Source: Adineta vaga (taxonomy: Eukaryota; Animalia; Rotifera). From it: DNA of 64,000 bases. Positions within the stretch are counted from its first letter, which is position 1; each line of letters begins with the position of its first letter. The notes beneath the pieces were generated by a model. It saw only the letters and a program-made list of their open reading frames with translations, had not been told where the DNA came from and did not search any database. Position numbers and translations under genes: made by a program. Of the stretch, positions 20,101 through 41,128 are shown piece by piece. The DNA lies in the NCBI GenBank assembly GCA_021613535.1, contig CP075495.1:7068001-7132000 (forward strand). Reading direction: 5' to 3'.

Positions 20101-22461
20101 TCATGTTCTACCAGCTGGTTAACATCGCGCAAACTGATCATCGTACCTCATCCATAGTGGCAGCAGACGACCTTTCGCTCATCTAAATCTATATAAATAT
20201 ATATATATATATATAGAAGGAGAGAGAGATAGAGATGTACTAATTCATTTTTAAACAGAACTAAATGATCTTTAATATGATATTATTGAAGTGTTTGATG
20301 AAATAAAAACCTAACAAAAAAAAGCGAAGATGAAAATAAACTAACATTGACTTTTTGTGTTCGTTCTAAAATGTATACTGACGTGTAAAGTGTGAATGTA
20401 AGCTCACACGCACATAGATTCACAATAACATTTTTTTCTCTTCTGTCTCTTCCTTTTTGCTGATTGAACGAGTTTGTGCGTCAGGACGAGTAAAAAAAAC
20501 GATGACTTATTGCCTTCTTTTCTAGTTTTTTCTCTTTCTCTACTTCCCATGCTGCTTGTAACGAACTTAGTCTCATCCTCTTTCTTCTTCTTCTTTTTTT
20601 CTCTATTCAACATCGTGCATTCTCTTCTATTCAGACGCTTCTATTCAAGTGTCTTCTATGACCATGTGTTGGTCATCGACAATATGAAAAGAATTTCTTC
20701 ATGATTGGAATAAAAATGATTTTTTTTTCTTTACGACAGAATCTCTCGAAGGTAATCGATAAAAGAAGAGAAACTTCTTTCTTCTTGATATTCTCCAGCT
20801 GAGTGTTATGTCTTATTATCTGATGAATAACTTGTTTTGTCTATAGCAAATTATTATTATTATTATTGTTGTTGTTGCTGTTATTTCTCTTCATGTTTAT
20901 ATCCGGAAGTATTAGAAATGTACAGAAAAGAAAGAAAATTCTCTGCAATATGGACTGATAATTACTTAGAAAAATATAAATAAATAACTAAAATCGAATG
21001 CTAATATGTCTGTGTATGATTTCGTTTGTTTCAGTGCAATTGAAATGATTGTATCGAAAATTCAAAATCGACAATGGCTTGTTGATGAGAAAAAAGATGA
21101 TGGATTTACAGCCTTACATTTAGCTGCACTTAATGATCATTATCTTGTTGCAGAATTACTTTTGACTAAAGGAAATGCATCCATTAATATACAGAATATA
21201 AGTTTTCAAACTCCACTTCATCTAGCTGTCGGTCGGCAACATCTTCAAATTGTTAATGTACGGAAAAAAAAGCATTTTGTCTCGTTTTTTTCCGAAATCT
21301 AATATTCATTTTCTTTTATTAGTTATTATGTAGTAAAAATGCTAATATTAACCTTGTTGACAAAGATGGTGATACATGTTTACATGAAGCATTAAGACAT
21401 CATACATTATCACAATTAAAACAATTACAAGATGTTGGTGATAGTGGCAAGGTTTGTTTCTGATTTTAAAAAGAAAAATATCGATCGATTTGTTGTTTTT
21501 AGACAATGAATATATTTACAGATACGAATGGCTATGATAAACGACCAAGTGTAGCTATTGCTTGTATATTAGTTAGTTCAGGTGCCGATTTATCAATACG
21601 AAATAAAAAGAATCAAACACCATTCGATCTCTGTCCTGATCCGCATCTCTGTCGACTTTTAACGCAAAAAAACATGTAAATTTCTACGATGAATTTATCT
21701 CGGATAGATTTGACTTTATTTTTAGTGAATATAAACGAGAACATTTGACAAATCAGTCATTATCGGATAGTAGTAGTTCAATTGAATGTCTTGTTTGTTC
21801 GGATAATAAACGAGATACATTATTTCAACCATGTTCACATATTGTTACTTGTCATACGTGTGCAAGTCGAGTAAAAAAATGTCTTCTATGTAAAGAGAAT
21901 GTTCAAACAAGAATTAAAGTAAATTATTGATCTTTAATTTCATTCTTTTCTATATATCTTCACTTATTTCTTTCTTTAGATTGAACAATGTAAAATATGT
22001 TCGGAACGTAAAGCATCTGTTATGTATAAACCATGTGGGCATTTAATTGCTTGTGAAGGTAAGTGAAGAATCAAGTTCAGATAACTATTTTTCTTATGAA
22101 TATTCGTATAGAATGTGCTGGTATAATGCAAGTATGTCTTGTATGTCGAGTGCCAATAGAATCAACAGTATCATTCGAGAAATTATGTTCGGGAAATAAT
22201 GAAAATGTTACATCAAAATCAGAACTATCAAATACATTGGCCATGTCATCGAATAATGTTAGTGATGCCGTTGCATTAGCACGTTTACAACAACAATTAC
22301 AAGAGATTCGTGAACAAGTCCATTGTCCGATCTGTATGGATCGTTTGAAAAATATGGTCTTTCTATGTGGTCATGGTATTTGTCAAAATTGTGGCGATCG
22401 TGTACAAGAATGTCCAATATGTCGAAAGCAAATTGAAAAATCGATTATTTTATATACATAA
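17123..22461 (+). CDS. MIB1: Mind bomb-type E3 ubiquitin ligase (2 Mib repeats, ankyrin repeats, 3 RING fingers)
   Basis: [29 protein letters not shown]...[23 protein letters not shown], ankyrins ([35 protein letters not shown]) and terminal [39 protein letters not shown]. Contains a ~2.1 kb intron (about 18895-21034). Confidence 0.93.
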
Positions 22462-22623: not shown

Positions 22624-23290
22624 TTAGGTATTGGATTGATGTACGCCTGAATTTTTTAAACCTTCAAGAATTTCTAAGAATTTAGGGTCATTGTTAAACG
22701 CTGGACTCTAAATTGAGAACGCAAAAAGATTTCAAATTTTCAAAGTTATCGTCTTAAGATAAAAGTTTCTTTACCTCACGTTGTGGAATAGGATTGACAT
22801 TTGATTCATTGGAGTTAATCCCAGGTGGATTTGAGATATTAATTTGATCATAAAATTGATGTGCAATATTCTCGGTGACATCCGATGTGATAAATGATAA
22901 TAGATCGGATTCTTCTTTTGTAGACGAAGGTTGATCTATAGTGTTGGGATGATAATGAATTACCGAAGATGCCGTTTGTTGTTGTTGTTGTTGTTGTTGT
23001 TGAATTAGTGGTTGCACAAATGGCATATGCGTTTGCTGTTGCACGACTGTCTGTTGATACTGCATTTGTGGTGAATGTTGTTGATACTGCATTTGTGGCG
23101 AATGTTGTTGATACTGCATTTGTGGCGAATGTTGTTGATACTGCATTTGTGGTGAATGCTGTTGAAGTATTGTCTGCTGAAACGGTGTTTGTGTCTGTTG
23201 AAATTGGGTCTGTGGTTGATGATGAGGGTGATGTATTGGTTGAAATCCAGGCGGTTGATATGTCATCTGTGGTGAAAATTGCATTGGTAT

Positions 23291-23324
<34 letters not shown>

Positions 23325-26300
23325 GTTGGTACTTGTGTTAGAATCTGTGGTGATGATTCTAATGGCATTGAGAAATTACCACGACCATATTGACGTACAA
23401 CTTGTTCTGCAATGTCTGGACGAGAAAGTAGCTGTTTCAATATTGCTTCGTGATTATTCGCATATGAAGTCGGTTGTGAAGGTGGTCGATTTGATGGAGA
23501 TACAATATTTTGTGGTGATGCAATTGTGTGATTTGAACTGTCATATCCGATGGATCCGTAATCATGAACACTGCATGCATCACGGCTCTTAAAAGAAAGA
23601 AATTTTAAGATTATATAGAAAAGAGAATGATATATCATCCGTACGTTATCAGCTTCAAATGATTTTAGTTGTACTGGTGACCATGGTGTATTTGAATCTG
23701 AGATTAAAAAGAAAAGAGTACGAATAAATCTATATTTATTATTCGTATACCTGGACTATATATCCATGGTTGTTGAGAATGTTGACTATTTATTTCTGAA
23801 TTATCATCGTCAGCATTTCCATCATTAGCACTAAAATATTTCAAATGAAGAAAACATGAATTCAAATCTAAAAGGGTCAAGAAATGAAATGAATTTACTT
23901 TTCTACAAGATCCGTAACTGGTTTGTATTTTTCATCATCTTTCAATAGTTTTTGCAATCGTTTATCTAATTTTAAATTTCATTATCAAATTTTCATTTTA
24001 TGTTCCTAAAAATTTACCATAATATTTCGAAAATTCATTAAATGATAAATAAGTTCTTCCATTTGCTCGATCATCAAAATTAGATAAGATACGTATTCGA
24101 CTAGCATTTTCTGTTTCAGCTGTTGTTACAAATCTACTAATATCAGTTGCTAATGTACTCGAATCAAATGTACGATTTTGTAGTTTTTTCGTTCGATCTA
24201 AATAGAAAAGAATAGTTTTTTTTTCTCAAAAGAAATTACAATTATGAACAATTTACCATTGTATATATCTACACGAACAGCACAAGGAGCAAGTTTCACA
24301 GATCGACTAGCTGCTACAGCTGATGCAACCAGACTATAATCAATTCGAATTGTATTAAAACGAAGTCCAATGACTGGACAATCGGACACAGATGATTGAA
24401 CGATTGCTTCAGCAGCTCGTTCACTGTTACATATACCAAGAAATAGTCTTTTGAACAAAAAAAAAGAAGATAACATTTTATAATTATTCACGATAATACT
24501 TCGACGAACTTACCCATCAGCATGAAACATAGCAAGAATTGGATGTTTCGCCATAAATTCCACTTGATAGACAAAATTAACCAAAAAATCCTGAAAAATT
24601 TCCTATAAAATGTATGAAAATTCATAATCTGAACATACCAGATAAATATCTTCTAATAGCTGAGAGTTATTTCTTTGAACTAGAAATAAAGATACGACAA
24701 TGAAAACATCAGATTTTCCTATTACTTTTGGCTTTGGATAATTCTTGTTCAATATATATATTAATACATGAATTAGGAGCAACACCAGTTCGATGAATGA
24801 AATAACGTTGGAGAAAATATAGAATTGTTTCAACATTAATCGGTTTGTTCTAAAACCATTAGAATGAAATATTTTGAGAAAATCAAATCATTGTCATACG
24901 CGAGAACATCGTTTGATATCTTCAAGTATAACACGTGTTAATAATTGTGGAATTTGATTATTATGAGCACCAATACCGAATACTAATGATTCTAATGCAA
25001 ATTGAAATACTGGTGGTGTTTTACTATCCAATATATTCAGCTAAAATCAATTAAAAATGAAGATGAATTAAGAAGCAAATTTGATTTACTTGAAGTTTTA
25101 TCGCAAATTTAAATGAATGTAATAATTGAGCAAAACGAACACGTGTATCAGATTTTGATGATTGTTCAATTGTTATAAAAGATACTTCAGCACAAAGAAA
25201 TGTTCGATATTTACCACCGCCTGTTTGAACTTGACAAGCTTTCCATGAAATACTACGTGGTTCTTCTAGTTTATAATAATCTGATGATGGACATAAACTT
25301 GGCTCTAAGTAGAACGTTAGATTTTCTAGACAATATGATTATTTTAAACAAATATCTCATACCAATATCGTAGAGTTCTATTACATCAGGATATAATTGC
25401 ATGAAATCATATAATAATGAAATGATTATAACAGATATTTTGGCTGTATATTCACCAGGACCTTTTCGTTCATAGATTGTCACTGGATTAACACCTGAAT
25501 GTGGTTGAGAAACAATCATAAATGAACTAGCAGATTATAAACAAATGAAAATTTCATTTTTCGCATAAAAATTTTCTTACCTGCGAAATACAGCTTCAAA
25601 TTCATTATTCAATGGTTGAGATTGACGTGTCTTTGTCGTTGTAGATATCTTAGTCATTAATGACTTTAAATGCTCCGTAGTTCTAAATAAAAGAGAATAA
25701 ATCACATATTCTCCTATATAACTATCGTATAACATACCTGCTTTGTAGATAAACTAGATTTTTTGGATTATTAACTTCTGCATCATTCTGATAGAATAAT
25801 CTACGTATTTCTTGTGCGTTTTTTCGTATGTTAAACTCGTATTCACGCCTGGTAAAATCCTAAATATATATATATATATACTGGTTGTTTTTAAAATCAT
25901 TTCATCGAAATTAACTTACGTAAGAATTAGGAGAAAATTGTTCATCTGTCATTTTATATTGCATATCCAGTCGAGTGTCAGATATCAATCGAGCAAATCG
26001 TGTTTCATTCTTTAATTTACAAAAAATAACCGAACAAACATTTCTATTGAGAAAAAGAAACTAAACGAAGATAGTTGAATGCTTACTTCTTTGATGTAAT
26101 GTATTAATCGATCGAGCATTAAACATTTTTCAATAGATGCATCAATCTCAGGTAAATTGTCACGTTTATCTTCTAGTATTCCAGTAAAATTGGTTTGTTG
26201 TCTAAAATTCAAAACAAAAATAAAGAACGAAACATTTATATTTGAATCGATTATAAAATTTACCCTGATCGACTTCGTTTTTCACTATCATCGATAATAT

Positions 26301-26600
26301 CAGAAAAATTTATATCACCAACTGATTTTCGTGTTAGAAATGCTTGAACACCAATTGTTTTATCAGAATATTCATTTGTAGCCAGAAAATCATAACAATC
26401 AAGAAGACTATGTATAGTATTCTAAAATAAAACATTTGAAATTTCTTTATATTATGAAATCAAATGATATACCGATTGTGTTGCTGATGTAACTGGTTGC
26501 TCTAGAAAAATAATGAAATGAACATTAAGATGAGAATGAGAGAGCCTCACGAATACATACGCGTTGGTAATGATCGTTTTTTTTTATTACTACCACTCAT
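22624..26600 (-). CDS. Divergent STAT-like transcription factor (copy A): DBD-like, linker, SH2-like, Tyr motif, Gln-rich tail; many small exons
   Basis: Spliced translation gives SFMIVSQP...EYTAKISVII (STAT FvvekQP..FtakvRll), ESLVFGIGAHNNQIPQLLTRVIL (STAT SLPVVVIvHgsQ..awasilW), FHADGLFLGICNSERAAEAI...IGLRFNT (STAT WndGyImGFisKe....FLLRFS) and DEKYKPV after the SH2, then a poly-Q region. Confidence 0.7.
23052..23164 (-). repeat. Coding tandem repeat, 27-bp unit x ~4 (QQHSPQMQY)
   Basis: Plus-strand unit tgttgatactgcatttgtgg(t/c)gaatg(t/c) repeated four times, flanked by (CAA)n poly-Gln runs. Confidence 0.9.
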
Positions 26601-28115
26601 TAGTAAAGCGAACAGATAATGGATACAGAAATATTTATCTAGAAAATATAAATAAACTAAGAATGACGAGAGAAATAAAAGGTTTTCTTTCGCCGAAAGT
26701 TACCATGGATCGATAATTTAGTAGAGTTATGGGAAATGTTAGATTAGAGCTTTTAAAAATTATAATAATAAGGGGAAAAGTAGAGTCGATTTTTATGATC
26801 GATTCTAATTTATGAATAAAAGTCGAATTATTCAAACTTTGAAAATAGTTAGTAGTCAATTATATGCGATGTGAAATGATGTATCGTTTTAAATCCCTTA
26901 ATAATTATTTTCGCTTACATGATGAAAAGACGACTGTCTTCTTTAATTTTAAATTTAATAAACAGTAGTTCTTATAATTCATCAAATGCATTGGTTACGA
27001 CTCATTTCTAATTTTAAACTTACCTCTAACAATAAAAGAATCTTTTTTTAGTTACCCTTTTAATGCTATTGAATTCTTGACGGGGCAGTTTCTTTTTGGT
27101 TAATATGATGTGTAAATTTTCTTTTCTTTTTTTTCTTTACTCAAAACTTTCTTTTTCTTATATAGTGACGATTCTACAAGGTTGTGTAGAGCAAATAAAT
27201 ACAGAGAAGAAAAAAAAGGAGGCACTCAGCAATGTCTTCAATGAAACTATAGAACAATTTTTCTTTCTCTTCTTTTATTTCTCAAGAAAGAATGAATAAA
27301 ATCAAGTTTGAAACCTCGTGTGACTGGCTAGTATAAATACGAAAAAAGAAAATGTTTTTTTTTCATCATCATCACATTTCCAAGAAAAGTTAAGTGACGA
27401 GTGCTTCGCCTAGTCACTTGAAAGGTTTTATTTTTCCGGGAATGCCTCGATTGAAGTTTTTCTTGACTTTTGCTCCGAGAAAAACAACATGATTTCGAAT
27501 AAATGCAAATTTGTTTTCTGTTTGGGTGCGTGAAGTATATTTGCCATACGTACTCGACATGTAATAGATTTCTTCTAGAGTTGAATGTATCATTTGTATG
27601 ATTTATGAAGAAGATAAGTCGATGTTGACGAAAGAAATGAAGCTTTTGATTCTATTTCTTGCAGTGAATCATAATAGATACATAATTCATGTTTCAACAG
27701 ATATCTGTACGGAAATTGTTAGAAAGTTCATTTCTTCGTTCCAGATTGAACATCTTACTTTATATTTTGAAAACATTTTTCTGTTGATTCACTATATTTG
27801 CATTGTAAGATGTCACAATAAAAAAGATCGTTAAGATTTATATTGATATTTTTCATCGTAAACTCGATAGTATATGAGATGTAAATATTCTTACATATTT
27901 CACACATATACTTCGCATGTTAAAATATTTTCTTTGATCTTTTTTTTCCCCACTTTTTCTGTCTCTTATATTTTGAATGAAATTATTCAAATACAAAGAG
28001 TGGTATTAATTTCTATTCTTTATTCAAAGTTCATTTTGAATCTAAACTATCAATTCAAAACGATAGAACATACATATACTGAAAAAGAAACAAACCATAA
28101 CTATCTTTATATGTT

Positions 28116-29642
28116 CTATTCAATTGTTTCTGCTTTCCAACATCGATTTCTTTTTGCATCATTATTATTCATTCCATATCTTGACTTCTTCAGAATCAAC
28201 TCTCGCCAATATGCATTTCGAAGTTTTTCATACGCATACACATTCGGCTCTTTCACTTTCTTCCTTGCAATCTCATGCAGTTTACTTCGAAGATATTCTT
28301 CATTCAGTTCACTCATATCATTGATCACTATGACAGGTAAGTTTTCATACAATGTATCAAGTGTCGAATGCCATACTATTGGAATCACATCGAGATATAA
28401 TGCTTCCCATGTTCGATGACAGTCCAGTCCACCACCACGAGGTGATAACCATAGTGGATATTGCCGATTTCGTCGATAGATCGTTGGCAGACTCGAAATA
28501 TTCACTCCATCAGTTTTGTCATAGCACATGGCAAATGAGTTTTGCTGATTTGAACAGATTTGTTGCCATAGTTTCATTCGACCACCAGTTGGATCAGTTT
28601 GAGGACGAAAGTTGAGAAGAAGAATGGGATCTGACTGATTATTGTTGTTGTTGTTGTTGATGTTTGTAAGAACAGATTGTGTGACATCGACAAGTTGAGT
28701 GTAGTGAGATGGTTCATCAATATCATTGTGGTTGAGAGATGGAAGCAGTTGTTTTGGATAATGTCGATGTACATCTCGAATAGCTTCAGCCATTTCAAAA
28801 CAATTAATACCTAAATAAATAGAGTTGTTTCAATAAATGAATAAGTCCACAAAATAATAAATAACTAATAAGATCAAATCACTGCACTAACACCGCAAGA
28901 ATAGAATTTTTATAAATCAGAAATATCGGAAAGCAACAAACATTAAAAAAGTCTGATAGGAAATGATGTGTGCATGTCTTCTTTTATTCTTTACGTACAG
29001 TTTGCGATCGTTTTGGAAAGGAACAAGTGGAAAAGAAACTAAAAAACACTTTGACTATACGTATGTATTCTTACCAATCGGTATATGAGTAAAACGTTTG
29101 CTTCTGGTTCCAGAAATATCTCCATTTTGACCGAACCAATGAATTATTTTTGACTGAGATTTTTCTAAATAATGATGATATTTACCAGGTGCATGTTCAT
29201 CACCTTGACCAGTAATTAATACAAATCTATTCATTAGATACGGATATATCTTAGTGAAAAACGATTCAAGACTAGCAACTTTAACATAAATGATACTACC
29301 ATGTGGAAGGTTTGGTACGAGTAGTTTGTATTTACTACGAGAATTTTCTATTCGTTCATTGAATAAAGTCTCAGGCCAACCATAAATCCAATCAGCTAAA
29401 TTTCGAAAATTTTGTGGACAAACAAATTCTGGATAATGATGAATGTAAGAAGAATTGTCATTAAAAACTATGAAATTACCACTAGTTTTGAATGAATATG
29501 GACACAAAGGTAAATATAACGAACTTATTTCAATAAAAAATTGAAAATTTATCCCATAATGAAAGATGATAAAGATCATCATAAGGAAAACATTTATTAG
29601 ACAAATGATTTTTAGACGTCGAGGATAATACATAGATTGCAT
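28116..29642 (-). CDS. Type II membrane exostosin/GT47-like glycosyltransferase, two exons (intron about 28811-29074)
   Basis: N-terminal TM anchor (IICLINVFLMMIFIIF), FVLITGQGD, IIHWFGQN, HIPIGIN and C-terminal LWLSPRGGGLDCHRTWEALYLDVIPIV, the GT47-like nucleotide-sugar motif. Confidence 0.75.
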
Positions 29643-30650
29643 ATGTAATATGAGAATTTTTAGACTTCTCAAACTACGGTATGAATTACAGATAATATTA
29701 GTACGGTTCTACGAGCCACTATGATAGTATGCGCTCAGAATAGAGAGAAAAAATTCAAAATATATAGTTAAAAACATTTATCTTCGTTTTCTTATGCAAA
29801 TTGACACACAAATATTAACACGTATCAGTGTTAATGACAATGTATTTCTCTTTCAAATTTTATCATGAAAGAATTGAATAACATTAGTCGAGTTGTTCGA
29901 ATGATCAAAGTCAAACAATGATTTTTCTTATTGGCAATGGTTATATATGTAATCATATCGATGGAAGGTAACACTTTAGTGTATTGTAGAATCTATTAAC
30001 TAAATGTTGACAAATATATATTTAATCAAACAGTATACAATAATGATATTATGCATCCATATGACGATGATCACTCATTTTAGTAAGTAGGTTTTTGATT
30101 TTAACATTGTTACATGACTTTCGATATATATATATATCGGCTTTTAAGGCTATGCTTCTAAACATTTAGGCGGATTGTATCCGATATAAAACTTTACTTT
30201 AAGAATTCTAACAAAAACAAAATAACTATAAGTGTAAACTTTGACTTATGTTCTCAGCTTTTAATCTTTGATTTATTTTCCTCGAATGGGTATCTCTTAT
30301 TATTTTTATCGGCGAGAAATTTGATTTTTTTACTTTTATCATTAAACCAATAAACATTTAACCTTGTTTTCTCTTTTCTGTCAGAATGATGACATCTAAG
30401 AATTGATAAGATATCTGCAGATTCTTTTAAAATCTAATGATGAAAGAACAAAAGAGTTATTTTTAATTTGCTATTATAATCATCAGAAATGCATCAAATA
30501 AAGAACAAAATATAGTATAAACGCATAAATAGTTATATTTTATATTATGATTACAAATTTGTACATAGATAAGAGTTGTTTAAAATACATTCAAACAAAT
30601 AACTAATTTAATTAGTTATTTCATTCGATAATCTTAGTAAATTTATCTAA

Positions 30651-33600
30651 CTATGTATTTGTTGATGATGAACAGTAGAAAGTATATGATTTCGAATCAT
30701 TAGTTTTGTCTTTCATTTGTGTAGAGGCTTGTATATGAGAGATTGATTGTAAATAATTATGTAATAAGTTAGATAAAAAAAGTTTACGTTGTTCAATAAT
30801 GTCTTTAGTTGTATTTGATGAAGTAACTTTTGTGTTTGCATTTGATGAAGTAGTCATTGTTTCAACATTTAGAAACATTTCAGGTAATTTGTCTAAGAGA
30901 AAATGGATTAATTTATTTGTTTCCAAATTAATTTTTTGATTCAAATTAGTCGAAGAATGTATTGTTGCCGATGCTTCATCGAATGAACTAGCTAAATATG
31001 AAATGTATATTATTAGCATTAAGAACATTATTTATTAAATTAGTTTATACTTTGATCTGAAGTTGTAGTACTTGACTGAAAATGAATAAGTATGGATTAT
31101 TAGTCGATGTATATGCACATAGAAACTGAAATTATTTACTCTAGATGATTCATCTTCATTGGTCGATGATGACGTTGAGGATATCACTGACGCTTCAGTT
31201 TCTGAAGAAATGAAATACAATTTATTTCGAATATCTTAATTCAAATATTTCATTCGTTTACTTGTTAGTTGTTCATCATCAGTGGATCTCCTAAGCAAAA
31301 AGAGAAATCAATCAGAAATAATACGTAAGTCAAACTTACATTGTTGACCAAAGAACAGGTATCAATGGTTTATAAGTTTCCTTTGTCGGAGGTGCAACAG
31401 AACTGAGACGATACAATTCTTTATCTAGACATTAAAAAGAATAGACTCTTCTTTTACATTGTGTTTCGAATGATTACATACTAAAATATGTACTAAAATC
31501 ATAAAAATTTCGATCGGATATAGTCGATAATATTCGTGATCGTTTTGCTTTTTCTGTAATTGACTCGCAAATCATTCGACACATATCATCAATGAATGCT
31601 TTCGAATGAAAAGCAGCTTTGATCAATTCACCTAATTGTCAAAAAAAAGTAACTATATAAAGATAAACAATCGTTTAGCAAGAATATTTACCGTTATGTA
31701 CAATATATCGAACAGACGCTTGTTGAGTTGATTGATGTTCAGCGAGTGTGTCAAAACGTAATAAAATATGTAATTGTTCTCGACTACCATTCAATAGTTG
31801 ATCAACAATACTATTATAAATGCCTAGGAAAAGACTAGACATAGATCGTGTTAAATCTGTTAACTTTCAATTTTATTAGTAATTACTTATCGTGATACAT
31901 TATGGATAGCACAGGATGATCCACATAGAATTCTATTTGACTGATTAGTTTAGATAAGATATTCTTAAAATAGAAATCAGATACATTTTGTTTTTTAGAT
32001 ATTTCATTATTCGTACTTCATAGACATCGCTTGATTTGATATTTGTAGTATTCTTTCTCTCTTCTATAACACACAATGATACATTGGGTTTTAACTGAAA
32101 TCAGTACAAACCATAGAGTACTTGGCATTGTTGAAAAATGAATTGTTTAGTATGAACTTTAGGTTTAATACCTGTTATGCGTGTATGATAATCACAGATA
32201 CTATCAGTCATAATATCGGGTGTAATTAGATGATTCATCTAAAAATAAAATAGAAACAGTTTAAATCGAGAATTTCTTTGAAATTTATACATTTTGAGGT
32301 CGTTGTTCAATTTCATAGATAATCACTTTAGCTACATATTCCGGAAAATATTGAGCATGTGAACAAACTCCAAAGGGTCGTGAAAGGAGTGTTAAATTTT
32401 CTTGAAAATCACTATTGTTCATCTAGTTACAATTCATTTGATAGATCTTAGTTTTAAATTAGAAATAAGACTTTACACTAATATTTAATTGAAATTGTAA
32501 TTGACAAAGTGTGGATTTATATAGTGGACGATTACTTCGTCCATCCGGTTTTGTTAATTTAATCGTTTGTAATTCTGCATAATAGAATAATTTCGAATAA
32601 CCATTTGCATCAAAAATTTGTTTCGTTTTCCATTCAAGTGCTACTTGTCTCTCACCTTCATTATCAATCTGACGATCCAATGGATAAAGTGTCACACCTA
32701 AATTACAGTTAGATAAACAATAACTGAAAAATCAATCTTACCCATGGATGATAATACGAAATGAGTATGAATTATATTAGCATCTAATAGACAAATTATA
32801 CGTGAAGTAAGTCTAGCAGTGTAAGTATTGTTCATTTTCTCATATTTTACTGCAGCAACACATTCAGAAGTAGATGGTTCAGCGATAATTACAAATGAAC
32901 TATATTAAAATAGGAAATCGATATGAAAATTGTACTTATCAATAACTTACTGTTGTAAAAGTTCTTTCAACTGATTCCATTGTTCAATCTGTGTTTGTTT
33001 ATGATCAATTTCATAAGAGTCAATCAATTGAGAACATAGTTTACTTATACTAATAATATTTATCATACTTTCAAACATAATGACAAGAAATTTATGAAGA
33101 ATGCTTACGCTTGTTGTAAACTCAAGAATGTATATGAATGTCTATTTTCATTCTGGTTGATATAAAATAATCGTTGTTGATACAGTAAATATCTATAAGC
33201 TCGAATTTCATTATACAAATGTTCTGCTGTCTAAAAATAGATTCCAACATATGTTTCTTTTTTATACAATCCACTTTATATCGTACTGGAAATGGTATTA
33301 TAGTACTTGTCATACGCATCGTCAGTTCTGCATATAAATTTGCTGAATGTTGAACAAATTCAGTAGGATTCTTCAAAGCATCAAAATCATAATTATATCT
33401 TTAAACTGATGGTTCATCTTTCTCAATCATACCTTTGTACATTCATGAATCAAACGATTTAATATAAAACATTTTTCAATTGAATTTATATTACGTTTTA
33501 AATTTCGTCGTTCACGAGCCAATAGACTAATCCAATCATGTACTAAACTGAAATCATACATATATATGAATCTTATCAAATATTATAGAATATGTATGAA

Positions 33601-33887
33601 ATACCTTCGTCGATAGAGATTCGAAAAGGAAAGATTAATCAATTGTTTATTAGTCAAGCAGAAGAACAAGCCTATGGCATGAGGACATAATTCATTTGGA
33701 GCTAAGAATGCAAAATTATCAGCTAAATCTCCAATTGATTCAAGATTTGACTTTTTGCCATGTTCATTTTCTGTTAATGAATCTGAAACTATTTTAAATA
33801 AGATCATACACTAGAATGTAATTACAACATATTTTCATTACCTTTTCTTTTACTTGCTTGTCGAGAGGGTTTATCAAATGCAGACAT
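30651..33887 (-). CDS. Divergent STAT-like transcription factor (copy B); many small exons
   Basis: Spliced translation: SFVIIAEP, YYAELQTIKLTKPDGRSNR..LQFQLNIS, LLSRPFGVCSHAQYFPEYVAKVII, QIEFYVDHPVLSIMYHDNLFLGIYNS...HILLRFDT...VRYIVHNG, FYDFSTYF, KETYKPLIPV, then an S/T-rich tail. Confidence 0.68.
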
Positions 33888-34911: not shown

Positions 34912-37231
34912 TTAAACATTATTCATGGCCATTTGAGGAGGTTTATTTTTTGATATGGTACTTTTCATCCCGTTCGTACCATTTGATCCATTCACACTTA
35001 TCTTTCCAATATCATTCGCTAATAAATCATTATCATTATAATTTCCTTCCGTTGCGATTACATCTGTTTCTTCGTCTTGCTTACCAAATATCTGGGTAAA
35101 TAATGTATCGAAACGTGAAATTAATGCTGCACCTAAACAAATATACTGCATGGAACTGTTCAATGCTATTCGTTTAACAGATATTGACCATGTATTCATT
35201 TCAATACCAAAATTATCGGAACCAATAAGCCATTTATCATCTTCCCAATCGATATAAATAATTTCTTCGGCAACTTGACCATCGGGTTGAAAACGATATA
35301 AACTAAATTGATAATGTTGATCTGTTGTTGGTTCTTCTAATGATGCTGTGAAAAGATCTTTACTAAATTTAACAATTCCCCAATCACCATGATGATCTTT
35401 GATAATCAATGCTTCTTCTTTTTCCGGTTCTAATGTAATAATTGAATTATGATTATTACTTGAAATTTGATTTGGTAATGGTAATTGTGACCAATTCAAT
35501 GTATGACATGAAGCAAATATTGCACTGTTAAATGTTGCTGTAAATATATCGATATCATTAATAATCGTGTGACGAACATTAAGTAAAGTTGGTTGTTCTT
35601 GATGAATAGGAAGAATACTATGTAAAGCTTGTCTAACTTTTACAGTTTCCAAATTGAATAAAAATGATGTACCCAATTGCGTAAGATAATTTTGACCAAG
35701 TATTACATCTTCGTAATCGGCTGCTTCGTATCGAACAATGATTGTATTAATATCAATTGCGGGAATACCGACAACAAGTCTAAAGAGAAAAAAAAGAAAG
35801 AATTGAATGAATAATTACAACTATAACATACCTTCTTGCTTTTGGTATCATTTTTACAAATGGTGAACTAGGATCGAGTGCCTTATTAAATATATAATAA
35901 AGTGTACCTGGTGCATCATCACCATCAGCCTGTAAACCAGATTTAACAGGTTGAATAAAATTTGTAATTGAATAAAGTTTTTCTACAGGTACTTGATATT
36001 CTTCTAATGAACTGAAATAATTCATCGGCCAATAACCTGCTTTTTGTTGAATTTTAAGTACCAATTGTGTTGTTAAATCACTAAAATCTGCTTCAAAATG
36101 TGCTTCAACATTTCCTGATGAACCTCGAGCAAAAAGTTCTTGGTCTGATGAATTGATTTGTGCAAAAAGTTGCTCAGGTAATGGTTCTGCGCCAACATGA
36201 TCATGTAGAGAAACAACAGTACTTGATAGATTTTCATTTCCTCTTCCATTCACAGCTATTGTCGAAGAATTATTATCAAGAAATTGAACAAAAATAGAAT
36301 ATCGTTGACATTCAAGTAGAAAACTGAAATCTGTAACATATTGATAGAAATCTTTGGATGTTTTTCCACGATACATGCAACCATTTTTCGGTAAACGATC
36401 ACCATATAATTCAAACCATTTATGTCGAGTTTCATGATCTGATGTTGATAATTTTGAATTCGATGTACGATCTTGTGTTGTATCATCATGATGAAGTACA
36501 TGTTGAAGATTAGCAATCATATCTCGACGATAAACTTCCGGAAATAATTGATGAGTATGCCAAATAATATCAATATCATACATGGGTACAACATATAATT
36601 GAGGATTTAAACGTTTTAAATAAATAAATTTTTTATAACGTTTTATTGCTTCTTCAAGAAAATCTGGATCTTTATAATGATTAAGAGCAACTGAATAATA
36701 GAAATCTGTTTGTCTTTCAACAGCTTGACTTAATGCATATTTGATTTTACTTGTATAAGGTGGAATAACTTGTATATTTGTTGAATAATCAAGTTCAAAT
36801 GGCATTGTACGATTATATTTTTTTATCCATAATTGTTCACTGAATTTCATCAGTTGTTCCGTACGTGGTCGGACACGATTCGGTAAAATACGTCCAAATA
36901 AACGTTCACAATCACTCGCATATGCTGTTGGTGCAAGCATATGTGAATGCCAAATAAAAAGTATATCAAGTGGTGGTATAACATCCAGTTCACCATTTTC
37001 TGCTAAGAAGGGTAACCAAAATATTTCATAACGATAGATAGCATATTCACGTGATTGTTTTTGAAGATATTCGGGATGATCATAGATTTCTTTTAAATAA
37101 GCCAAATGATCATAGACAGCTGGTTTTAGATTTTCACTAATTATTATTTGAGATGGATGAGTTATGGAAGGATTAAATGGAGATTGACTTGCAGCGGCTG
37201 ATATTGTTGATGAGGACGGTGTTGAAGCCAT
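34912..37231 (-). CDS. Glycine-rich domain-containing protein-like (GRDP, DUF1399), two exons (intron 35780-35831)
   Basis: Two DUF1399-type motifs: RYEIFWLP..PPLDILFIWHSHMLAPTAYASDC and AIKRYKKF...VPMYDIDIIWHTHQLFPEVY...HHDDT..DR. Confidence 0.85.
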
Positions 37232-37760
37232 GGTTCGTTAGTAAATGAGAAAGAAAAAAAGGTAAAAATGAAGAAATATACGTTGAAACAAGAGTATTCA
37301 AGGAAGAAAGCGAACGAAAAAAACGTTAGATAGTTACGCCTGATTAAACACAATCAACGAGCATAACTTACTAGATGAGCAGGATAAAATATAATTTATC
37401 TACAGAAAATGTCAGGCTTTTTCGCTTTTTCTCGAAGGAGACATGATACATAAAGAAATTTCGTTCATAAATTCTTTATCACATTTTTTAATATGATTAT
37501 TTTATATAAAAGCGAAGTTCTTTAAAAGATGAATATTACTACAACATAAGCATAATAAGAAAAAGGATCGAGACCTTCAAGTATAATATTTCCACCATCA
37601 ACTAGTGACATCTGTGCTAGTTTGGGTTCTTTTTCATTTTGATTATTTTACCAATTATAAGCGTTTAATTACAATCTAATTGGATCATTGCACTTAAATC
37701 GGACGCATATTCCAACTCTACCTATTTTGATGTTGTTTGTACCAAGTTCGTCGAATGTGA

Positions 37761-39891
<2,131 letters not shown>

Positions 39892-40008
39892 ACACAAAAA
39901 AAAACGAACATTTATGAGAGAAGTTTTATTTTTAGTCAAGCACAGTTTTGTAATTTATTTTATTTTTTATCATAACGACAAATAAATAAAATATGAAATA
40001 GGATAGTC

Positions 40009-41128
40009 TTATGATCCACCAGAACCAATAATTGCTATTCGTGGTGTTGTTGAAACAGTTGTTGAAAAACGATGTCTTTGAAAAAAGCAGAATGCACAGA
40101 AAACTTTCATAAATTCTGTCCGACTATTTTGAAATGGTAAAACAAATGCAACAAAATTCAATGTTGATGCCAATAATTCATTAAATGATAAAAGATAATA
40201 CAAAGCTGTATAAAAATTTAATTCAATTGGAATAAAATATCGTATTAATAGAAGCATTCGTAGTGGAAATGTTGTTGTCACTTGTAAAATAGCAATAGCA
40301 ATAAGAATAATACTTGTTTCATAGATTGATGTTCCTAATTGTGATTGTTGTTGTTGTTGATCATTTGATCGTAAATATCGTTGATGACGTTTATGACGTT
40401 TTAATCCAATAATAATTAAAATAATTGATATTGTTGTTATTGAACAAGGTAATAATGAAAATAAGATAATATCAACTATAGCATAGATTTTATAATTAAA
40501 AGTCAATTCTGAATGATATATATGAAATACATCAGAATAGAAACAACGTGAAAAATCCATTGAAGCAAAATAATCTGGAATTAGATAAAAATGTGTGACA
40601 ATAAACATAGTAATTATATTGATTAATTCTTCGATGAATGCATGACGCATTGTTGTTAAATATCTTGCACGAAATGGTGACCAAAGAATAATACAACGTT
40701 CAATGGAAAGAAGAACAATAGTTACAATAGATAAATGAGAAAAATAGTTTTGAAGAAAAAAAGCGAAATTACAACGAGTATATTTGTATCTAAAAATTTC
40801 GTCAATCAATTCTTTGAATCAATGAACTCATAAAATGGACTTACCTTGGTAGAAATAATGATAAAGGAGGAAACCAATAGAATAATCTTTCAATAATACG
40901 ACATCCATCATAGATAGCTAAACATCGAATATGTAAACCGAACGATGTTGTTCGATAGAGTGGAGAAAAATGTATAAGAAGAAATGTAAAAATACTCAGA
41001 ATAATTCGTGCTAATTCAAGAAATGGTGTTAAAGTACTTGTTACTAATTGTATTGTACTTAGAAATGATCCCGATTGGGGTAATAATAATATTTCATTAT
41101 TAAAATAAGTTATATTTGTACGATTCAT
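40009..41128 (-). CDS. Class A (rhodopsin-like) GPCR, orphan peptide/chemoreceptor type, two exons (intron 40790-40844)
   Basis: N-terminal NRT/NIT sequons, LAIYD in TM2, Cys at top of TM3, SIERC (DRY-equivalent), LLPC in TM5, TTFP in TM6, TLNF in TM7. Confidence 0.85.

Follow-up and report, generated by a model that had tools for sequence, protein, structure and literature searches.

We analysed a window of 64,000 nucleotides (nt) from the bdelloid rotifer Adineta vaga (contig 2:7,068,001-7,132,000, from an assembly of 100.8 Mb in six contigs with ~30% GC; coordinates below are window positions) and describe here two genes on its minus strand, gene A and gene B, which we assign to the STAT family. 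The features of both genes are collected in Table 1.

Gene structures

The exon structures of genes A and B were obtained by hand splicing of the minus strand DNA, and their introns are GT-AG throughout, with sizes of 44-77 nt. The splicing is supported because spliced alignment, orthologue proteins and recurring introns agree. Aligning protein B onto the gene A DNA returned the same gene A exons, although with splice weights trained on these introns, and the spliced aligner also reproduced the NCBI models of three paralogues on chromosome 5. The A. ricciae protein P0109 aligns gap-free with gene A across residues 18-637 (61% identity overall) and the alignment continues to the C-terminal end, and the A. 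steineri protein P0122 spans gene B at 60% identity. The introns of both genes were found again in A. ricciae, A. steineri and Didymodactylos.

An earlier description made from the DNA letters alone (the sequence-only reading) had proposed two same-strand genes sharing an ordered series of motifs that ends in YKP, with at least four matching introns. Indeed, all the motifs are present in the stated order on the minus strand. The matching core introns number 14 in a row; they share their phase and sit at equal or close positions in the alignment, 10 of the 14 within about one column. The glycine of the proposed 'YNG' motif did not survive: it lies in a split codon and reads Asp in gene B once spliced. 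The two proteins share 26% identity over 625 columns in blastp (E 8e-40) and a Smith-Waterman score of 428, compared to a mean of 43 and a maximum of 67 for shuffled sequences.

Table 1. Features of genes A and B and of the gene between them, in window positions.
Feature	Position	Strand	Basis or detail
Gene A, A-type bdelloid STAT	33887->30651	minus	19 exons, 746 amino acids (aa), no internal stop; model of orthologue P0109 folds as STAT
Gene A exons 2-4, all-helical N-terminal domain, probably STAT N-domain	33287..33782	minus	weak 1bgf match, suggestive
Gene A exons 5-6, shortened coiled-coil region	32951..33230	minus	~85 model residues (102-185) in the STAT coiled-coil place
Gene A exons 7-9, immunoglobulin-like (Ig-like) STAT DNA-binding domain, ending at His363 (codon 32359-32357)	32357..32899	minus	predicted model
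Gene A remainder of exon 9 and exons 10-12, helical linker domain	31887..32356	minus	predicted model
Gene A exons 13-14, SH2 domain: betaB5 Arg495 (31758-31756), betaB7 Asp, alphaA2 Ser477	31482..31834	minus	model and alignment
Gene A exon 15, tail, Tyr584 of YKP (31374-31372), phase 1 / phase 2 exon	31340..31424	minus	splicing
Gene A exons 16-19, Ser/Thr-rich C-terminal region, candidate transactivation segment	30651..31290	minus	inferred; 36% S+T
Unrelated gene between A and B, not a family member	29672->28116	minus	two large open reading frames (ORFs)
Gene B, B-type bdelloid STAT	26600->22624	minus	20 exons, 961 aa, open frame; model of orthologue P0122 folds as STAT
Gene B exons 8-10, DNA-binding domain, ending at His371 (24965-24963)	24963..25526	minus	predicted model
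Gene B remainder of exon 10 and exons 11-13, linker domain	24514..24962	minus	predicted model
Gene B exons 14-15, SH2 domain: betaB5 Arg502 (24362-24360), betaB7 Asn, alphaA2 Ser481	24018..24447	minus	model and alignment
Gene B exon 16, tail, Tyr610 of YKP (23927-23925)	23899..23965	minus	splicing
Gene B exons 17-20, Gln/Pro/Ser-rich C-terminal region, candidate transactivation segment	22624..23830	minus	inferred; 21% Q, 10% P

Predicted folds and intron positions point to a STAT lineage

Template-free AlphaFold models of the A and B orthologues reached a predicted local distance difference test (pLDDT) of 89 and 88 and a predicted template modelling (pTM) score of 0.90 and 0.91, respectively. 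When these models were searched with Foldseek, the best 45 matches were all STATs for both (best E 1e-12 and 9e-12). The VIA structure search gave Z 16.1 for the A-type model and, for the B-type model, Z 16.5 to STAT6 (root-mean-square deviation (rmsd) 3.9, 368 residues aligned) and 15.1 to STAT1, the best non-STAT reaching 7.2. Both models align to STAT1/3/5/6 over 360-380 residues with Z 14-16.5 at 10-16% identity; the alignment spans the coiled coil to the SH2 domain and begins at the first coiled-coil helix (STAT residue ~136). An Ig-like STAT DNA-binding domain, a helical linker and an SH2 domain are present in one chain in both models, so the order of DNA-binding domain, linker, SH2 and tyrosine tail proposed by the sequence-only reading is borne out by the orthologue models.

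The coiled coil is present but shortened to ~85 residues, roughly half the length of that of STAT1, and whole-chain template modelling scores (TM-scores) are only ~0.45 because the coiled coil is short. At the N-terminus, the helices gave a weak match to the STAT4 N-domain 1bgf in the expected place (Z 4.8, rmsd 3.2, 103 of 124 residues); an ESM Atlas search with this N-terminal part was blank. The ESM Atlas feature search with the A orthologue returned its own rotifer cluster and otherwise only STAT among the named clusters listed (best 0.94, 212 of 256 features). The models and comparisons show, in the order seen in STATs, a short coiled coil, an Ig-like DNA-binding domain, a linker, an SH2 domain and a tail with a conserved tyrosine; an N-domain probably stands in front of them.

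Gene structure points to the same family. In human STAT3, phase 0 borders separate exons at 488/489 and 551/552, a phase 1 border falls within codon 701 and a phase 2 border at c.2144 (codon 715); the frameshift caused by deletion of exons 17-19 (p.N489Vfs) implies that exon 19 ends in phase 2 as well (PMC8217968). Four intron positions of gene A line up with those of human STAT3 in phase and spacing. A phase 0 intron lies 22 residues past His363, as 488/489 lies 22 past N466; another lies 52 residues ahead of the SH2 Arg (58 for 551/552 in STAT3); a phase 2 intron lies 26 residues ahead of the Arg in both, with the end of STAT3 exon 19 placed at codon 583; and a phase 2 intron follows the tail Tyr after 11 residues in gene A, 9 in gene B and 10 in STAT3. 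The exon that carries the tail Tyr is small and runs from phase 1 to phase 2, like STAT3 exon 22 with Y705, although the upstream phase 1 border of this exon differs, being 17 (A) and 13 (B) residues before the Tyr versus 4 in STAT3. Three more STAT3 borders (before AFVVERQP, in codon 534 and in codon 630) also appear to match in phase and place.

Because folds, language-model features and intron positions agree independently, it is almost certain that A and B descend from an animal STAT gene. Dictyostelium STATa (1uus, 1uur) is also a structural match (Z ~12), although it scores below the animal STATs, and the intron positions and probable N-domain argue for animal STAT descent.

Family members and relatives

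Profile searches placed the family at eight loci in the A. vaga genome, five A-type and three B-type. A ninth locus was found neither with a 587-position profile nor with the distant relative P0081, and the window itself holds no remnants of additional family copies. The window is collinear with the homoeologous contig 5:11.12-11.18 Mb, which carries an array (C5:11,139,900-11,164,000) of six tandem members, four A-type and two B-type. The nearest chromosome 5 copies are 50% identical to A and 52% identical to B, and the A/B split therefore predates duplication of the block. The earlier proposal of a tandem pair arising from an old duplication thus holds for the old duplication and not for an isolated adjacent pair, as an unrelated gene separates A from B and the genome has eight copies. 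That such genes would be annotated merely as hypothetical proved correct for the chromosome 5 paralogues I4U23_025503-025505, which are recorded as 'hypothetical protein [Adineta vaga]'. Three copies of this array have lost 1-3 introns, and the copy c5a1 has a 282-nt intron where other copies have ~55 nt.

Outside A. vaga, the named database matches were all unnamed proteins of Adineta, Rotaria and Didymodactylos, and the remaining matches were unnamed fragments from metagenome and read assemblies; among the relatives found, the family appears to be restricted to bdelloids. A quick tree of the family proteins alone separated A and B types with full support, Adineta and Rotaria members occurring in each. 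Judged from these sequences, A and B are two old bdelloid-wide subtypes. For P0081, the search gave no separate orthologue in A. vaga. Core exons are missing from several public gene models of the family (P0043, P0047, P0028, P0030, P0058 and P0103), and in P0103 (Rotaria sp. Silwood1) two neighbouring family genes are fused, which suggests a tandem array in that species too.

The lineage restriction proposed by the sequence-only reading therefore stands, whereas the canonical STAT that it expected alongside the family was not found, by weak tests. STAT Pfam models gave nothing above cut-off against the genome in an exon-wise and insensitive search. None of 42 genomic loci with Pfam SH2 matches that had a readable core motif was STAT-like, and none fits the family profile. 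The JAK FERM model PF18377 gave a single sub-threshold match (E 0.2), by a method that also misses the family STATs. Absence of canonical STAT and JAK from A. vaga is plausible on these exon-wise, candidate-limited searches. It is a bolder and rather doubtful suggestion that bdelloids lack canonical STAT or JAK and run the whole STAT pathway on the expanded family, reading phosphotyrosine through a rebuilt SH2 pocket; if true, the pathway would run on substitutions that are loss-of-function in humans.

Conserved residues of the SH2 domain, tail and DNA-binding domain

Residue counts were made in a 32-sequence family alignment, with the tail Tyr scored in 31. The SH2 betaB5 Arg is present in 32/32, and both models predict it on a strand. 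Of the 31 sequences, 30 (97%) have the tail Tyr, in a stretch whose columns are mostly at 20-60%, save a Pro at +2 and one Leu. The BC1 position is Ser or Thr in 20 of the 22 B-types. On the DNA side, the base-contact position, whose register was set by the STAT1 sequence and the predicted strand-to-helix junction, holds His in 26 sequences, including both window genes, Arg in 4 and Asn in 2. Asn, as in STAT1/3, is found at this position in the long-branch relatives P0081 and P0095, and the chromosome 5 paralogue c5b1 has Arg. The single direct base-contact residue of STATs is N460 in STAT1 and H415 in STAT6, His being present in STAT5/6, and the STAT1 N460H change leaves specificity intact (PMC5737217). 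The neighbours of this position differ by type, with Ser-His-x-x-Tyr in A-types and Ala-His-x-x-Gln in gene B.

Proposed mechanism and alternative explanations

We lean, with modest confidence, towards a mechanism in which A and B would lie latent as transcription factors until the tail Tyr is phosphorylated, and would then dimerise by way of the SH2 Arg and bind DNA by way of the His. The Y-x-P-hydrophobic tail would be phosphorylated by a tyrosine kinase that may be other than a JAK, as with C. elegans STA-1; STAT signalling without JAK is known (PMC5587905). In the partner chain, the invariant SH2 Arg would then bind the phosphorylated tail in a rebuilt pocket, with Asn or Asp at betaB7 and no alphaA2 Lys, and its affinity would probably be lower or altered. 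The dimer would contact DNA via the conserved His and act via its low-complexity C-terminus.

A number of results weigh against this mechanism or against the STAT assignment beneath it. Pfam models, STAT_bind, STAT_linker, STAT_alpha and SH2 included, gave no match (E<=1) on single exons or on ten full-length relatives, and PDB sequence searches with exon and full-length profiles, including the 32-sequence profile, gave chance matches only; NCBIfam was likewise blank on two full-length relatives. The divergence of A and B has passed hidden Markov model (HMM) detection. The proteins that were folded are the orthologues, 61% and 60% identical, and not the window's own proteins. In the SH2 domain, the FLLRFS signature with an invariant Arg, as read earlier from the DNA, is kept only in its Arg. 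The betaB7 position is Asn in 26 sequences, Asp in 2, Glu in 2, His in 1, Gly in 1 and Ser in none; alphaA2, whose register was set from the 18 residues that separate it from the Arg in gene A and from where the helix is predicted to begin, is Ser in 27 of 32 and Lys in 1. In human STAT3, S611N and K591E/M each lead to loss of function (PMC6895964). In the DNA-binding domain, every A-type carries Tyr or Leu at the position equivalent to Q463, and gene B carries Ala at that equivalent to S459; in STAT1, single changes at these neighbours abolish specificity (PMC5737217). With contact neighbours that differ between the types and matter for specificity in STAT1, it would be unsafe to presume that the DNA site is the gamma-activated sequence (GAS) element, from which it may differ. 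A and B are thus STATs by descent, but without the strict canonical signature.

The strongest alternative, which we regard as possible though unlikely, is that A and B are STAT-derived, phosphotyrosine-independent factors, like C. elegans STA-2 or unphosphorylated STATs, whose pocket would no longer take phosphate, with the Arg and Tyr retained for packing and regulation exerted through localisation or binding partners. STA-2 itself provides the precedent (PMC3670131, PMC5587905), two of the main phosphate ligands are replaced family-wide (PMC6895964), a helix directly follows the Tyr in the predicted models, no JAK FERM match exceeded the cut-off, and the chromosome 5 paralogue c5a3 has Phe at the tail Tyr position. 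However, a structural aromatic would be expected to swap with Phe more often than is seen for a Tyr so rarely lost, the Arg is invariant, the B-types largely keep Ser or Thr at BC1, and STA-2 lost its tyrosine motif whereas the bdelloid family kept it.

That A and B form an obligate heterodimer, like STAT1:STAT2, for immune or stress signalling seems improbable to us. Both types are retained on both homoeologous chromosomes, the linkage of A to B is kept in A. ricciae and A. steineri, the Y-x-P tails are similar and the DNA-contact residues differ type-specifically, all of which would suit such a pair. Linkage would nevertheless be expected from tandem duplication anyway, an unrelated gene lies between A and B, copy numbers are unequal (five A versus three B), and in Rotaria socialis an A-type gene was not seen within 10 kb upstream of B. 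Finally, it is very improbable that A and B are of non-STAT origin and reflect motifs alike by chance, an artefact of splicing or an unrelated protein with an Ig fold and an SH2-like part. The lack of any Pfam, NCBIfam or PDB sequence match and the low TM-scores might speak for such an origin, but template-free models align four domains in STAT order, language-model features and intron positions independently indicate STAT, and the short coiled coil accounts for the TM-scores.

Comparison with known STATs and significance

The STAT family and its divergent derivatives in nematodes are known already; the novelty lies in a family that spans the bdelloids, has eight copies and escapes HMM detection, with the Tyr and Arg retained but not the remaining canonical pocket. 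No paper describing genes A and B or the family was found in the literature searched, the coverage of which is incomplete. Compared with metazoan STATs (human STAT1, STAT3, STAT5 and STAT6; PDB 1yvl, 1bg1, 1y1u and 4y5w), the bdelloid proteins share the domain order, the folds, the betaB5 Arg, a tail Tyr just past the SH2 domain, a base-contact His as in STAT5/6 and several intron positions in common with STAT3. The FLLRFS signature has been reported as common to all STATs (PMC6895964), whereas the bdelloid signature is xxxR[FLM][ND] and the alphaA2 Lys is lost. The bdelloid family also differs in its 10-16% identity without a Pfam STAT or SH2 match, its coiled coil of about half length, its Y-x-P-hydrophobic tail and its eight copies in one invertebrate genome.

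C. elegans STA-2 (F58E6.1) is similarly a lineage-specific STAT derivative, less than 20% identical to its parent and with a reduced coiled coil (PMC3670131, PMC5587905). Unlike the bdelloid proteins, it scores on SH2 and DNA-binding HMMs; it lacks the tyrosine motif and long C-terminus, both of which the bdelloid proteins keep, and it accompanies the canonical STA-1, whereas a canonical partner was not found in A. vaga by our weak tests. STA-1 may serve as a model of how a tyrosine kinase other than JAK could activate a STAT (PMC5587905), although it is a recognisable STAT with all classical domains and the absence of JAK from A. vaga is weakly tested.

Invertebrate phyla are scored for STAT presence or absence by sequence search, and a 2026 survey, in which rotifers were not included, left STATs undetected in flatworms and nematodes (PMC13203501). 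As an intact, expanded STAT can fall below HMM detection, reported absences need a structural check. The family is also a natural experiment on SH2 chemistry: in three rotifer genera, betaB7 Asn and the loss of the alphaA2 Lys have become fixed, each of which causes disease in human STAT3, with the Arg and tail Tyr nearly invariant. Bdelloid biology also gains a concrete candidate regulator of pathogen or stress responses.

Neighbouring genes and further observations

In the C-terminal exon of gene B (23050-23170, minus strand), four near-perfect 27-nt repeats between two poly-Q runs code for a Gln/Tyr-rich 9-mer. An ATG at 26706 was rejected as the start of gene B, because a stop is reached after 13 codons. 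This ATG, upstream of the gene B start (26639-26706, minus strand), is followed by a good candidate for a 65-nt GT-AG intron, and it would make a 13-codon upstream ORF in the 5' leader.

The collinear chromosome 5 block lacks the unrelated gene that separates A from B, and A. ricciae, A. steineri and R. socialis retain this gene at 55-72%. Its C-terminal part may resemble exostosin/GT47-like glycosyltransferases, although Pfam and NCBIfam were blank for it. A mind-bomb-type ankyrin/RING E3 ligase gene on the plus strand ends at 22461, in convergent orientation to gene B, whose stop is only ~160 nt away. Upstream of gene A, positions 35780-40809 hold a GRDP-like glycine-rich domain gene, an alpha-amylase family gene and a rhodopsin-family G-protein-coupled receptor gene, in the same order in A. 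ricciae. A. ricciae likewise has the GRDP-like gene, A, the unrelated gene, B and the mind-bomb-type RING ligase in this order, A. steineri shares the part of it that starts with A, and in Didymodactylos a B-like gene adjoins the ligase.

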